Sequence record: MN794232.1
Direction: 5' to 3' (one strand)
Length of the DNA stretch: 64,000 bases
Position numbers and translations under genes: made by a program. Positions 516-60,182 of the stretch are shown one piece after another (position 1 is the stretch's first letter; each line of letters opens with the position of its first letter). Under the pieces are notes generated by a model. That model ran no database searches, had not been told where the DNA came from, and was given only the letters and a program-made list of their open reading frames with translations.

Positions 516-631
516 TGGTAGTCGGGGCTGGATTCGAACCAGCGACCACGTGCTTAACAGGCAATTGAAGGAGTGCTGGAGCGATACTTGACAGTATCAT
601 TCTTCGTGCTCTACCACTGAGCTACCCGACT
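516..631 (-). tRNA. tRNA-Asn(GTT) scaffold with a 41-nt insertion between positions 28 and 29
   Basis: Acceptor AGTCGGG/CCCGACT, A73, encoded CCA; D arm GCTC-AGTGGTA-GAGC; T arm GCTGG-TTCGAAT-CCAGC. Removing 41 nt joins CG+TGC, which pairs perfectly with GCACG around loop CT-GTT-AA. Confidence 0.75.
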
Positions 632-1158: not shown

Positions 1159-1171
1159 TATAATTTCCTCT

Positions 1172-1411
1172 TGGCGCCGCTCGTGTGAATCGAACACACG
1201 TCAAACACAACACCTCGTCCACCCAATTAGAGTTTCGAAGTAAGAGCTAATCAGCATTTCGGAGCAGTCGAGCGTTATTTCTACGAGTGAGCTTTCGACA
1301 ACTCACACGCACTTTCTACCCGGTCCCAGTGATTCGGTACCAACGCAGGTTGCGAACCTACGTCTGCACTAATGCTGGGAAAACACTGCGTATTGTACAC
1401 CAGTTAGCGGC
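1172..1411 (-). ncRNA. 240-nt structured RNA with tRNA-like ends (tmRNA-like topology)
   Basis: 5' GCCGCT pairs with 3' AGCGGC-G-CCA; T arm GTGTG-TTCGATT-CACAC preceded by GAC; stemless D-like loop ACTGGTG; several internal helices; fills the gap between two ORFs. Confidence 0.7.
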
Positions 1412-2306: not shown

Positions 2307-2417
2307 ATTACTACTTTGTTTCGCTTGTCAGGGCGTCGAAACGCTACCTAACCAAGGATTCGAACCTTTTAACCAACACCTCGCGAAAATTATTTTTCTC
2401 GTTGGCAAAGTAGTAAT
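2307..2417 (-). ncRNA. 111-nt structured RNA with an internal T-loop hairpin
   Basis: Perfect 12-bp closing helix ATTACTACTTTG/CAAAGTAGTAAT; AAGG-TTCGAAT-CCTT; GCGT-TTCG-ACGC; no ORF. Confidence 0.55.
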
Positions 2418-2431
2418 GTAAAAACATATAG

Positions 2432-2554
2432 TTGCGGGTGCAGGATTCGAACCTACATCACGATCTTATGAATGATATGCGAAATTGATTGCCGTACAGA
2501 TTCTTATCAGAATCAGTTTTGTGCTACGTGTGCTACCACTTACACCAACCCGCA
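2432..2554 (-). ncRNA. fMet-like tRNA scaffold (CAT) with 50-nt insertion, no encoded CCA
   Basis: TGCGGGT/ACCCGCA-A then CTA; D arm GTGT/GCAC; CG[50 nt]ATC pairs with GATCG around an 8-nt loop ATTCATAA; acceptor extended to 15 bp (2425-2562). Confidence 0.7.
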
Positions 2555-2625
2555 ACTATATGCTTTCGGGATGCTTACGCAGGTTCTTCTCTACGTAAGC
2601 ACAGTTCCTCAATGTATATTTTGCC

Positions 2626-2790
2626 TTAGCCAATCACAACACAACCCAACCCAATATCGTGCGCTTTAATTACGGGATTGATGACCCGTTCGCATGTGAT
2701 TAGCGTAAAAGTATGATTACGCACCTTTTCTTCTTCAATGTCCAAGGCAAAGAGGACTATGAATACTAGTGCGAGAAGATATACAATCAA
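2626..2790 (-). CDS. possible small membrane protein (54 aa, TTG start)
   Basis: GAGGTG SD before TTG; hydrophobic N-terminus IVYLLALVFIVLFAL; region also has hairpins and could be non-coding. Confidence 0.35.
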   Translation of the reverse strand: MIVYLLALVFIVLFALDIEEEKVRNHTFTLITCERVINPVIKAHDIGLGCVVIG

Positions 2791-2823
2791 ATTGCTCACC
2801 TCGCTTAATAAGTGAGAGTACAT

Positions 2824-2946
2824 TGGTCGAGTGTAACGGAATCGAACCGTTCCCACGATCTCCCTATGATATGCGTAAATTGGTTGCTGAATATAATCAT
2901 GTCTGATTACAGTATGCTACGTGTGCTGCCACTACACCAACACTCG
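2824..2946 (-). ncRNA. Pro-like tRNA scaffold (AGG) with 49-nt insertion
   Basis: CGAGTGT/ACACTCG-A-CCA; D arm GTGT-AGTGGCA-GCAC; CG[49 nt]ATC-ATAGGGA-GATCG; T arm AACGG-TTCGATT-CCGTT; terminal helix extended to 21 bp (2814-2960). Confidence 0.72.
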
Positions 2947-2961
2947 ACCAATGTACTCTCG

Positions 2962-3113
2962 ATATTTTAAATGTGCGCTACTTGCACGCCGACTGAGCGA
3001 ATTTTAACTCAGCTAGTTTTTGATTGAGACCTCGTCCGCTAAGACTATTCCCTGCACGCCAGAACTTATACTGGCTCTATGTATTCATTGCGGCTAACGC
3101 ACATTTAAAATAT
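2962..3113 (-). ncRNA. 152-nt structured RNA of unknown class
   Basis: Perfect 16-bp closing helix ATATTTTAAATGTGCG/CGCACATTTAAAATAT; two internal hairpins each followed by GGCGTGCA; no ORF. Confidence 0.55.
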
Positions 3114-3114
3114 T

Positions 3115-3219
3115 ACTCATCTTCAGCGAAGAGACAGAAACGATGAGTCTAGTCTGTTTAATCAATGTTGTTCATCTTCAAGAAGAGGCGAGAACGATGA
3201 ACTCAGCTCGCTTAATCAA
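3115..3219 (-). repeat. two tandem 55-nt H-type pseudoknot repeats
   Basis: TTGATTAA-GCGAG-CTGA-GTTCATC-GTT-CTCGC-CTCTTCTTGAA-GATGAAC and TTGATTAA-ACAGA-CTAG-ACTCATC-GTT-TCTGT-CTCTTCGCTGAA-GATGAGT; stems co-vary between copies. Confidence 0.7.
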
Positions 3220-3227
3220 CTGTGTTA

Positions 3228-3255
3228 ATCTTATCAGCTTCTCAGCGAAAGTCAA
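3228..3255 (-). promoter_or_regulatory. sigma70-type promoter driving the repeat/ncRNA/tRNA operon
   Basis: TTGACT-16 nt-TAAGAT with A-rich UP element. Confidence 0.65.
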
Positions 3256-3319
3256 CATCTTTTTCAAATATTTCATCGAGTTGAAAGTTTGTTTTCTGTC
3301 TCTCGACTCGATGAAATAC

Positions 3320-3347
3320 ATTCTACATCCTTTTCAGATGAAGTCAA
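3320..3347 (-). promoter_or_regulatory. second (upstream) sigma70-type promoter
   Basis: TTGACT-16 nt-TAGAAT; followed by a long hairpin at 3269-3318. Confidence 0.65.
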
Positions 3348-3363
3348 CAACTATTTTAACTTT

Positions 3364-3627
3364 TTAAACGGAAATGATAATGCCGCTTTCAGTCTCACCT
3401 CGTTCAAGCGCAGCGTGCTTGATCTGAAGTTGTGATACTGCTTGCTGAAGTTCAATAATAGCTTTGTCATAAAGCTTGTTGTTCTCTTTAAGCAAAGCAA
3501 TCTGATCGGTCTGCATACCAATGATGTACGTTAGTAGAACAACGTTCTCATCAGTCGTCAGCGTTTCAGGCGCTTCATTGTACTTCTTCAGCACCGCTTC
3601 GGTAGATAGATCAGTCATTATTAGCAA
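3364..3627 (-). CDS. hypothetical coiled-coil protein (87 aa)
   Basis: ORF track; overlaps the end of 57B; heptad-like central region. Confidence 0.7.
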   Translation of the reverse strand: MLIMTDLSTEAVLKKYNEAPETLTTDENVVLLTYIIGMQTDQIALLKENNKLYDKAIIELQQAVSQLQIKHAALERGETESGIIISV

Positions 3628-4066
3628 CCCATTCTAGATCTAGTGGTTCGATATATTCATCGACAAGGCGAACCTCTGTATTGATGAACATAGGTGTGAT
3701 TACGTCGTCATAAGATAATGTGACGTGCGGAGTATAGTCAGGGTAATCGTGAGTACCACCGATAGAGATAAGGTCTTCGTGACGTTCTACAAGAGCAGGA
3801 CATGACATCTTAGCAACGACCGCGTGTTTACCGTCTTGCGTTTTCCAACAGTCAACTTGTTCAACAGTGGCAACGAAAGTGGTATCTACAACAGGCACAT
3901 CAATTTGCTTACGACTATAAAGCACAGTCACGTGAAATTTATCTGGATCTAACGGATTTTTTAGACGAAGCGTTTTTTGCAAGCGAACTAGCTCTTGCTT
4001 ACTTGCTTCGTCTAATTTGATACCAACGTAAGTTCCCTGACTCTCAAGGAACTTAGATAGTTTCAT
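3611..4066 (-). CDS. 57B: gp57B / Acb1-family 2H phosphoesterase (anti-CBASS cyclic nucleotide nuclease homologue)
   Basis: Two HxT motifs (FHVTVLYS, PHVTLSY), WKTQDG and EPLDLEW as in T4 gp57B; synteny 1-57A-57B. Confidence 0.9.
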   Translation of the reverse strand: MKLSKFLESQGTYVGIKLDEASKQELVRLQKTLRLKNPLDPDKFHVTVLYSRKQIDVPVVDTTFVATVEQVDCWKTQDGKHAVVAKMSCPALVERHEDLISIGGTHDYPDYTPHVTLSYDDVITPMFINTEVRLVDEYIEPLDLEWVANND

Positions 4067-57497: not shown

Positions 57498-60182
57498 TTA
57501 TTGCATTGCGTAATCAATCGCAGTGATTGTGTCTTCATAGAAGCAAGCAACTTTGACTTCAGACACGATAGGCAAAGCCCACATTGTCTGACTTTCAGTT
57601 ACAGATCCCTCATCACGATAGCGCAAGAACATCTTGGCGTGGTCTGATTTCCATCTGTAGAAGCTAACTGCGTTCGTTGTGTATGAACCAACGCCTTTTG
57701 CTGTTAAGCTACTTGGATCATCTTCAGGGTTGTAAACGCCGAAGTAGTTTTCATATTTGTCTTGGAACGCTTGATGTTGAGCATCTGTCCACGTATGCGG
57801 TAGAATGAATGCTTGCATCAGAATCCATTTTCCGTTAGCGGCTGGGAAGTTATCAACACGATCAATCGTTGCATATGTTGAAGCATCTGTCCCATCAGCT
57901 AATTTCAATGTGCTAAACGCATCAGCGCCATCTTTGACTCGACAACTAAAATGTAAATAACCCGCGTCTTTATCAATTGAGTTTACCCACAATGACAAGA
58001 AGTATGGTCTTGTCGGGTCAATATTGATTTCAGACATTTCAATCATTGATTGTGTTCCCGTAGAGCGTGTGAAACACTTCTCGCCATTCGAAAGAACATA
58101 ATTCCCCCAATGAACGTTATCTGTTTCTCTGACTGGCATATTGACATTCTCGTATAGATTCGAGTTCGAGTTGTATGCATTAAACCAGCTTGTGTCATTC
58201 ACTACGTTGCCTGATATTGGTGAATTTACAATATCTTGAGCAGCTAGACCATTTATATTCGAAATCAAATGAGGAGTTCCGCTAGGAACTGCAAACCCGC
58301 CTTTGTAAACGAGTGCATAATCGAAGTACTCTTGGTCAAGATCTGACCAAACGCCAAATGTAACTGCACCTGCTGGGACTTGAACAAAAAACTCTTGAGT
58401 TTCGAATAATTCCGATGACCCGAAGAAAATATTCTGCCTTGCAACTTCAGTGTTCACTGCATTGTACATTCTCAAGTTACACGACTTCGTACCGCCACCG
58501 ATAGCAGTAGTTCTATCAATACACGCTCTTACTTTGTAGATCAGGTATTGACCTTCAACAACACCGAAGTCAGATAGATTGTATCGAGTATCAACGGGTA
58601 CCGTATCACGTGCTAGAAGCGCGTTTCCGAATCCTGCTGAACCGATTCCGTCTTTGTCTTCGAATGCAGTATCAACAATGCTGTCGCCGTCTGACGGGTG
58701 GTCGAATATACATCGATCATATACAATACCTAAATCAGCACGACCGAATGCTGCATAACTGTAGCTGTATTGGCTGAAGTACGAACTTCCTCTATACTCG
58801 ACGGGATTGTATTGATTGATTGCAGCATCAACCGCCACATCGCCGTACATCGAACCGTTCGATACGATGATGAATATTTCATTCGTCAGGTTATTCAACG
58901 CATTGACGAAGTTTCCGCGTTCAGTTGAACTACTCAAAAGATACTTGCTGCTTGTTTTCACTGTCAAATCATCATTCATAATCAGAAGACGAATTTGATA
59001 TGCTTGTTTAGTTTCGGGCGTGAATAGACTAATATCATTCAAATAACATGATGCTAGATTCGAACTACCGTTTGCAACACCAGTAGCAACTAGACGATAA
59101 TTGTTATTCGAGAACTCGCGAATGTGTCTAGCCGCAAGTTCATATTCACCTACTCGTGATCCTACAGGCGCATAGATCCACAATTCAGTTACATTGACTG
59201 TTTGTCCGGGACCTGGCGTAGAGCCGCCCGACGCAGCTTGCGCACCGATTGCATAATACCAGTTTGAGTGATTCACTGACCCATCAGCAAGTGAGTTTGA
59301 GCCTGTGTTGTACTCAATACCACCCCAATACTGAACGTCAGATTGGATTGAAATCGCTTCGTAGCCACGAACCCCACCAGTACGAGCATCATAATCCCCT
59401 GTGTAGTTTTTAATCAACGGAGCATCGGAAATCATGAAGTTAGTCAACCAACGTTTTCCAGTTGGTAGTTTAGCAACATCTGACGTATACCCACAATACC
59501 AGTACATATTACTTGTTGACAGAGTACTAGGCGTCGTGAAACGAGCATAATGACGCTTCCATAGAATTCCATCAACTATGCGTTCATTGCCGGCTGACTC
59601 AAACACATCACCCGGGATGTGACCTAGTGTATATGGGTTTGATGCACCGTCATACCAGCGAGAATGAAACAGAGCTGCGGTATCATGATCAGTATCGACT
59701 TCATATCCAACCCAACATGACATTGTGTATGTTCGATTCGGAAGAAGTCGAGTTTGTGGAACTGAAAATACAATTTGATCGAAGATCGCCGCAGTTGGCT
59801 GTTCGACGACGTATTTTGATGACCCTGGGTTTTCTTTTTCAACAACGACCCATGATCCTGTTTTTGTCGTTTGTTCAGTAACAAATTGACCACCAGCCAG
59901 GTTACCGTTTGTCAGATACTGACCTACTCCTTTCGCTGCGAAGTTGTTACTTTGTTTCCAAATATTCGTAATGCCGACTTCAGGGTAATGCAGCTTGAAT
60001 TGGAATTTACCGTCCTCACGACGAAATTCTTCAAGTGAGTTTAACGCACTGAATTTGGCTTCAATGTCGGGATCCGTCCCGACACTTCTAGCCTCAGCAT
60101 CGGAGGTGAAAAATACACCTCCTGTAGAATCATGGCGAAAGATTAGTAACCAATCGCCTTCACGTTTAAGTCTTTCGTACAT
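57498..60182 (-). CDS. 35: enlarged gp35-like long tail fibre hinge protein (894 aa)
   Basis: Directly downstream of gene 34; central region recalls the T4 gp35/ILEI-like domain; extra N- and C-terminal beta domains. Confidence 0.7.
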   Translation of the reverse strand: MYERLKREGDWLLIFRHDSTGGVFFTSDAEARSVGTDPDIEAKFSALNSLEEFRREDGKFQFKLHYPEVGITNIWKQSNNFAAKGVGQYLTNGNLAGGQFVTEQTTKTGSWVVVEKENPGSSKYVVEQPTAAIFDQIVFSVPQTRLLPNRTYTMSCWVGYEVDTDHDTAALFHSRWYDGASNPYTLGHIPGDVFESAGNERIVDGILWKRHYARFTTPSTLSTSNMYWYCGYTSDVAKLPTGKRWLTNFMISDAPLIKNYTGDYDARTGGVRGYEAISIQSDVQYWGGIEYNTGSNSLADGSVNHSNWYYAIGAQAASGGSTPGPGQTVNVTELWIYAPVGSRVGEYELAARHIREFSNNNYRLVATGVANGSSNLASCYLNDISLFTPETKQAYQIRLLIMNDDLTVKTSSKYLLSSSTERGNFVNALNNLTNEIFIIVSNGSMYGDVAVDAAINQYNPVEYRGSSYFSQYSYSYAAFGRADLGIVYDRCIFDHPSDGDSIVDTAFEDKDGIGSAGFGNALLARDTVPVDTRYNLSDFGVVEGQYLIYKVRACIDRTTAIGGGTKSCNLRMYNAVNTEVARQNIFFGSSELFETQEFFVQVPAGAVTFGVWSDLDQEYFDYALVYKGGFAVPSGTPHLISNINGLAAQDIVNSPISGNVVNDTSWFNAYNSNSNLYENVNMPVRETDNVHWGNYVLSNGEKCFTRSTGTQSMIEMSEINIDPTRPYFLSLWVNSIDKDAGYLHFSCRVKDGADAFSTLKLADGTDASTYATIDRVDNFPAANGKWILMQAFILPHTWTDAQHQAFQDKYENYFGVYNPEDDPSSLTAKGVGSYTTNAVSFYRWKSDHAKMFLRYRDEGSVTESQTMWALPIVSEVKVACFYEDTITAIDYAMQ

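Follow-up and report, generated by a model that had tools for sequence, protein, structure and literature searches.

Pectobacterium phage phiTE carries pseudo-ToxI repeats without a toxin gene, which are recognisable through their sequence similarity to host ToxI and are a precedent for RNA counter-defence by a phage. T4-type phages encode the antitoxin mimic Dmd. A type III locus is made up of a promoter, tandem repeats, a terminator and a toxin gene (Blower et al., PMC3401426), and the repeats measure 31-62 nt and occur in about 1.9-5.6 copies (PMC3401426, Table 2). Those of tenpI are 39-57 nt long at ~2.2 copies, and tenpIN has been found in Vibrio cholerae (PMC3401426). In TenpI, two non-identical repeats often make up a 102-nt cassette; each is an H-type pseudoknot with single-stranded flanks, the complex with the toxin is 2:2, and Tandem Repeats Finder misses the repeats (PMC13682666). 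The cassette is placed right after the promoter (PMC13682666, PMC12283969). In TenpI and CptI the long loop that lies along stem 1 is A-rich and L1 is a single nucleotide (PMC13682666).

Small RNAs in phage tRNA clusters have been unexplained since the T4 species 1 and 2 RNAs. These products of rnaC and rnaD are stable non-tRNA RNAs from the syntenic 3-1-57A-57B...tRNA region of T4, where the gene order is 3, 1, 57A, 57B, ipI, trna.4-.2, tRNAs, segB, tRNA-Arg, rnaD, rnaC (PMC3014915).

The 64-kb stretch of DNA analysed here (the window) is the final part of Vibrio phage VH1_2019 (MN794232), a KVP40-like Schizotequatrovirus, which it matches at 100% identity. Window position 1 corresponds to position 182060 of the record. 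The equivalent genes on the minus strand run gp3, gp1 (dNMP kinase), gp57A, gp57B and an 87-aa ORF (3364-3627), followed by a non-coding stretch. This stretch encodes a minus-strand non-coding RNA composed of two paralogous ~55-nt modules, the array, whose helices are kept by compensatory change (Table 1). It also opens a ~9-kb tRNA/ncRNA region of mostly untranslated genes, with ~30 tRNA genes on the same strand downstream of the array, and the original prediction was correct in placing the repeats at the head of an ncRNA operon. The array lies just downstream of acb1 (gp57B), with only the 87-aa ORF (phrog_15958) between them. In phage records gp57B is labelled 'RNA ligase' or 'hypothetical' despite its clear membership of the Acb1 family.

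Table 1. Positions of the pseudoknot units and of neighbouring features in the window.
Feature	Position	Strand	Description
gp57B/acb1	3611-4066	-	Acb1 anti-CBASS family, Pfam PF23474, E = 1.7e-46
Promoter P1	3320-3347	-	TTGACT, 16 nt, TAGAAT; from promoter scan; hexamers invariant in 13 phages
Hairpin at 5' end of P1 transcript	3268-3319	-	-22.3 kcal/mol, z = -7.3; kept in relatives
Promoter P2	3228-3255	-	TTGACT, 16 nt, TAAGAT, extended -10 TG; sigma-70-type; from promoter scan
Pseudoknot unit 1	3166-3219	-	Leader TTGATTAA, S1 GCGAG/CTCGC, L1 CTGA, S2 GTTCATC/GATGAAC, GTT, L3 11 nt, 4-nt linker
Parts of unit 1	leader 3212-3219, S1a 3207-3211, L1 3203-3206, S2a 3196-3202, GTT 3193-3195, S1b 3188-3192, L3 3177-3187, S2b 3170-3176	-	
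Pseudoknot unit 2	3115-3165	-	Leader TTGATTAA, S1 ACAGA/TCTGT, L1 CTAG, S2 ACTCATC/GATGAGT, GTT, L3 12 nt
Parts of unit 2	leader 3158-3165, S1a 3153-3157, L1 3149-3152, S2a 3142-3148, GTT 3139-3141, S1b 3134-3138, L3 3122-3133, S2b 3115-3121	-	
~150-nt multibranch RNA	2960-3113	-	19-23-bp closing stem, three hairpins; single-sequence z = -4.1
tRNA-like RNA A	2822-2950	-	Long terminal stem, T-arm, D-arm-like element; z = -3.0
tRNA-like RNA B, paralogue of A	2432-2557	-	From repeat search

The cassette is 105 nt long and consists of units of 54 and 51 nt; the ~55-nt register was also found by a repeat search, and Tandem Repeats Finder did not detect a repeat in the array. Both units are of H-type, with S1 (5 bp) closing before S2 (7 bp), a 4-nt L1, a GTT junction and an L3 of 11-12 nt. 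The L3 motif (CTCTTC..TGAA) is pyrimidine-rich and has only the terminal AA. The two units are identical at 38 of 55 positions, and 12 of their 16 substitutions fall in stems, where they make up six compensatory pairs (four of five in S1, two of seven in S2), exactly those claimed originally. Both strands of the 64-kb window were scanned with a descriptor for perfect Watson-Crick H-type knots of 5+7 bp with similar loops, and three matches resulted, namely the two units and an isolated match at 58882-58921, against ~0.6 expected by chance (analytic estimate). This last knot-like match, on the minus strand, has different loops and is probably fortuitous. Folding of the array with nested pairs only is unremarkable (z = +0.7), as expected given that half of its pairs are pseudoknotted, and every helix on its own has a favourable energy (-2.3 to -8.0 kcal/mol). 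S2 could be lengthened by pairing between the junction TT and the terminal AA of L3, both of which are invariant. Covariance model R1 scores unit 1 at 69.9 bits and unit 2 at 81.1 bits, high by construction with both units in its training alignment. A 14/15 near-copy of the leader, S1a and L1 of unit 1 occurs at 2773-2811 (minus strand), with an S1b-like pentamer 24 nt downstream. It lies at the start of a small annotated ORF, is missed by R1 and may be a decayed third unit.

The region is present in fifty phage records. The window was aligned with the loci of 12 relatives (13 phages), and 11 of the 12 relatives have two units; the exception, phage 1.081.O, has a single unit, its S1 being that of unit 2 and its S2 that of unit 1. 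With filters off, an R1 search of the loci of 10 relatives found exactly two copies per locus and nothing else, and R1 detected no additional copies elsewhere in the window, in another 50 kb of the phage genome or in the T4 locus. In the two-unit alignment of 12 KVP40-like phages, all 24 pairs are 100% paired, four of them with changes in both partners and none with a change in just one, against 24-56% paired in slid controls. Among 19 distinct units (from 11 phages, plus one unit from Tara Oceans), all 225 stem cells pair and seven of the 12 pairs show double-sided change (slid controls 25-56% paired). For related sequences the shuffle controls cannot be read as probabilities; the slid controls and the comparison of the paralogous units agree in direction. 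Invariant positions are the 8-nt single-stranded leader, the CT.. of L1, the GTT junction and both ends of L3. The RNA is assigned to the minus strand on the strength of G-U pairs, one in phage 1.081.O and others, conserved, in the adjoining RNA, which are compatible with a minus-strand transcript only. We regard the fold as very probably real. The original prediction of two tandem 55-nt pseudoknot repeats, which turned on their presence and covariation in relatives, is confirmed and strengthened by these phages, which keep the structure with 100% of the stem cells paired.

The original prediction also set the array a few bases after a promoter, and the promoter scan recovered this site (P2). 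Its hexamers are conserved in 12 of 13 phages, 1.081.O having TATCAT. P2 ends 8 nt before the array, and the predicted start near 3220-3221 puts the array within about 10 nt of it (a consensus-level prediction). With an early-type promoter immediately upstream, the modules should therefore form the first ~105 nt of the tRNA/ncRNA transcript, again as predicted from consensus. P2 is a diverged copy of the P1 module (73% over 41 nt). P1 transcription is expected to read through into P2 and the array, since the 5' hairpin of the P1 transcript is not followed by a U-run. Promoter plus stem-loop (PeSL) recombination modules have been described for nt-1 and KVP40 (PMC4122927), and P1 with its 5' hairpin (3268-3347, minus strand) fits that arrangement. 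Further promoter-like sites within the tRNA/ncRNA region were found by the scan at 2302-2331 and 1675-1703.

Directly downstream of the array in the same transcript is a ~150-nt multibranch RNA, whose closing stem begins 1-2 nt after unit 2. Compensatory changes were found in 22 of its 42 pairs (RNAalifold, 10 phages). It has no Rfam match, and covariance model R2 did not find it in the T4 locus or in the Tara Oceans contig described below. Its interior is ~73 nt shorter in phages VH7D and R10Z, which keep both knots. Beyond it lie the tRNA-like RNAs A and B, which are ~130 nt long, with a terminal stem of 10-13 bp and a long central arm; they are entered as tRNA-OTHER in some records, and neither ARAGORN nor Rfam calls them. 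By eye no tmRNA acceptor stem was recognised in RNA A, whose third acceptor pair is U-A rather than G-U. Two tRNA genes of the region, at 2185-2301 and 519-631 (minus strand; 55.8 and 49.8 bits), have anticodon-arm insertions of 45 nt and 54 nt, respectively. By eye both have a GTT (Asn) anticodon loop, and their inserts share a 5' motif. The positions of the inserts differ, one following the anticodon loop and the other splitting the 5' strand of the stem. Such insertion-bearing genes are labelled tRNA pseudogenes in KVP40, and a canonical tRNA-Asn is encoded elsewhere in the genome. At 1169-1411 (minus strand) a ~240-nt RNA has ends that pair beside a T-arm-like hairpin, a GCCA end and a weak beta-tmRNA match (14.8 bits); it is probably not a tmRNA, as its third acceptor pair is not G-U.

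Genome and metagenome pattern scans with a loose pattern gave, among the matches listed, one true distant homologue after the pairing filter. It lies on a Tara Oceans contig (CEVA01033652.1, identical in sequence to PBMB01000011.1) that has been binned as a Chloroflexota MAG. The contig has a single unit, in which the leader, L1, GTT and L3 are unchanged and the helices are new (GCACA/TGTGC and GATTATC/GATAATC). A canonical tRNA-Asn(GTT) begins 9 nt downstream of this unit, and a repeated promoter-like module lies ~190 nt away from it. In IMG/VR pattern scans the pairing test was passed only by KVP40 and VH7D, and all other matches failed. No plasmid DNA similar to the array was found by blastn. 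For the proteins of the contig, searches of PHROG and Pfam gave nothing but one sub-threshold DUF4942 match, and a tblastn search with one of its ORFs had no phage match; the contig is probably an unrecognised viral or mobile element that has been mis-binned. Its promoters are repeated and sigma-70-like, and it includes an ncRNA island of 1.9 kb. Some 350 nt on from the knot and its tRNA-Asn, it encodes a 95-nt T-arm-containing RNA (contig locus on the reverse strand, 3154-3248) that is 78% identical to window 2316-2408. The window copy (minus strand) occurs at >=99% identity, that is at least 99%, in only 8 phage records, where its flanks are ~88% identical, and it looks like a mobile ncRNA module. 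The position of this single knot, close before a tRNA-Asn and in a marine contig unrelated to the phages, suggests that the knot is a portable unit that travels with tRNA-type genes and uses tRNA processing.

The reading that we prefer, with a probability of about 0.3, is that the array is a protein-binding RNA, processed from the tRNA precursor, with an antitoxin-like decoy mechanism. That the pseudoknot RNA binds a protein is itself a somewhat better than even prospect. A rigid knot scaffold would present the invariant single-stranded nucleotides to the protein. The modules would be cut from the precursor along with the neighbouring tRNA-like RNAs and would accumulate early in infection. Once released, they could work in trans, decoying or inhibiting an RNA-directed enzyme of the host. 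A defence ribonuclease of the type III toxin kind would be the likeliest target, given that the cassette has the TenpI architecture, and the two copies might serve dosage or a dimeric partner. The maintained duplication, the portability, the TenpI-like architecture, the predicted early expression and the neighbouring acb1 all appear to favour a decoy. Against it, the array is kept throughout a genus of broad host range and also in an unrelated contig, as would be expected of a core function more than of a mimic of some sporadically distributed host system. Two further ideas, the GTT as an anticodon mimic for a tRNA-Asn-directed enzyme and L3 as an anti-Shine-Dalgarno-like sponge, were considered and dropped.

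A cis-acting leader of the tRNA/ncRNA operon, conferring termination resistance, precursor processing or slowed decay, is possible and nearly as likely as the decoy. The array stands within about 10 nt of the predicted transcript start in all KVP40-like phages, ahead of ~9 kb in which most genes are untranslated. Unit 2 borders directly on the closing stem of the structured RNA that follows, and the Tara unit, 9 nt upstream, is likewise in the 5' leader of a tRNA gene; untranslated operons such as those for rRNA, and HK022 put, give a precedent. One copy would be enough for a leader, yet two diverged copies are both under selection, and the internal promoter-like sites mean that a single element at the head is not obviously needed. 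The Tara unit is also ~190 nt away from the nearest promoter-like repeat, no Rfam family matches, and we know of no antitermination RNA that is a pseudoknot of this kind. The 1-2 nt that separate the S2 of unit 2 from the 19-23-bp closing helix raise another, rather unlikely reading, in which the knots are the 5' domain of one ~265-nt RNA that includes the ~150-nt multibranch RNA, comparable to the pseudoknots of tmRNA. Both parts are conserved together in all relatives, the array has a weak tmRNA match (14 bits), and the Tara knot directly precedes a cloverleaf RNA, a tRNA. Such a composite is disfavoured by the absence of the ~150-nt RNA from the Tara contig and by VH7D and R10Z, in which both knots outlast the loss of ~73 nt of that RNA. 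The tmRNA score is far under 47 bits, ARAGORN finds no tmRNA and none of its features are seen by eye.

Invariant loops on covarying helices are a signature of ligand-binding pseudoknots, and tandem aptamers are known. The original prediction offered a tandem ligand-binding aptamer as an alternative to an antitoxin mimic, and the units could be small-molecule aptamers that form a riboswitch-like sensor or that sequester a metabolite or signalling nucleotide; the neighbouring acb1 degrades cyclic-nucleotide immune signals. We consider this improbable. The array matched no riboswitch family in Rfam (preQ1, SAM-II/V, fluoride and others) at E up to 10, neither a terminator nor a ribosome-binding site follows either unit as an expression platform, and the downstream genes specify RNAs rather than enzymes or transporters, so that nothing beyond the conserved loops speaks for the aptamer. 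More speculative still is an RNA 'sponge' counter-defence, in which the knots would be high-copy aptamers that soak up a nucleotide immune signal or small defence messenger alongside Acb1; we give it very little weight. That there is no RNA element at all, only a chance repeat or part of a plus-strand ORF (3143-3367, KVP40.0320), is contradicted by the data. This 74-aa ATG ORF overlaps the array and is a hypothetical protein in KVP40, but it has no Pfam or PADLOC match, is unannotated in most records and has its frame broken by single-base indels in QD01, VS1, CZ01 and nt-1; the substitutions are instead pairwise compensatory for two crossing helices. A mini-ORF starting from an ATG inside S2b was also rejected, as the codon is not conserved (ATA in F86, K566 and D482).

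The motif, a tandem of TenpI-like pseudoknots that stands in a phage tRNA operon without a toxin gene, appears to be new; we found no Rfam model of it and, in a literature search, no description. It is compact and clearly supported by covariation, with a defined predicted promoter, a fixed place beside an anti-defence gene and a second home in a marine element. On either reading the motif merits its own entry among RNA families, and the 'hypothetical protein' annotated across it should be deleted. Should it prove to be a cis leader, long operons that are not translated would have a novel type of control element. Should it prove to be a TenpI-like orphan decoy, it would be the second known phage antitoxin-mimic RNA and the first RNA counter-defence against type III systems to be present genus-wide.

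Comparison with described RNAs gives several partial likenesses. At Rfam gathering scores no family matches the array, and the only match at E up to 10 is to the pseudoknot part of tmRNA (model positions 191-290), with 14 bits against a gathering score of 47. The array resembles PK2-PK4 of tmRNA in having consecutive H-type pseudoknots beside a tRNA-like structure; as a tmRNA it was rejected on this score, on the ARAGORN result and on the lack of a tag frame by eye. Pseudoknots upstream of the tRNA-shaped 3' end of plant RNA viruses are arranged as in the Tara contig, a knot 5' of a tRNA fold, an analogy without homology, and those domains are eukaryotic 3' UTR elements for translation and replication. 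The rnaC and rnaD genes of T4 have only the synteny of the region in common with the array, as they lie at the tail of the T4 cluster whereas the array is at the head, and neither R1 nor R2 matched the T4T locus, so no homology to rnaC or rnaD was found. The HK022 put RNA and the leaders of rRNA operons are promoter-proximal RNA elements that act against termination and are built of stem-loops or box elements. Like them, the array is a structured RNA that follows a promoter and heads a long unit, but it is made of pseudoknots and has no sequence or model match to them.

Several features of type III antitoxins are lacking. No terminator-like site was found by the promoter and terminator scan on the minus strand between 3115 and 2820, where the covarying ~150-nt RNA lies instead. 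The original prediction that no toxin gene is adjacent also holds: no ORF for ToxN, CptN or TenpN lies directly downstream, and neighbouring ORFs belong to no toxin or defence family by Pfam and PADLOC. Rfam includes a ToxI model, and no antitoxin in Rfam matched the array at E up to 10. L1 is 4 nt in the array and 1 nt in TenpI, the long loop is pyrimidine-rich rather than A-rich, and the array has a 3-nt GTT junction, which TenpI and CptI are not described as having. In contrast to type III antitoxins, which use both single-stranded tails, unit 2 has a 3' flank that pairs as part of the next RNA. The array is therefore not filed as a type III antitoxin, as it lacks a terminator, a toxin gene, an A-rich loop and a 1-nt L1, and its 3' flank is paired. 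It may work like one. The antitoxin-mimic or anti-defence role proposed originally is accordingly supported in part: the TenpI-like architecture, the presence of tenpIN in Vibrio and acb1 upstream speak for it, whereas the missing terminator, toxin gene and A-rich loop and the lack of an Rfam or plasmid match speak against it.

The points of agreement concern size, fold and position. The two units, at 54 and 51 nt, lie within the range of type III repeats in length and number, with only one copy in 1.081.O and in the Tara contig. Both helices of the H-type fold are 100% paired, with seven of 12 pairs covarying, and the sigma-70-type promoter occupies the position of a type III promoter, at consensus level. 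As in phiTE, toxin-less antitoxin-like repeats are carried by a lytic phage, with the difference that the array has no match to the Rfam ToxI model. With TenpI the array shares a ~100-nt promoter-proximal cassette of two non-identical ~50-nt H-type repeats that escape Tandem Repeats Finder.
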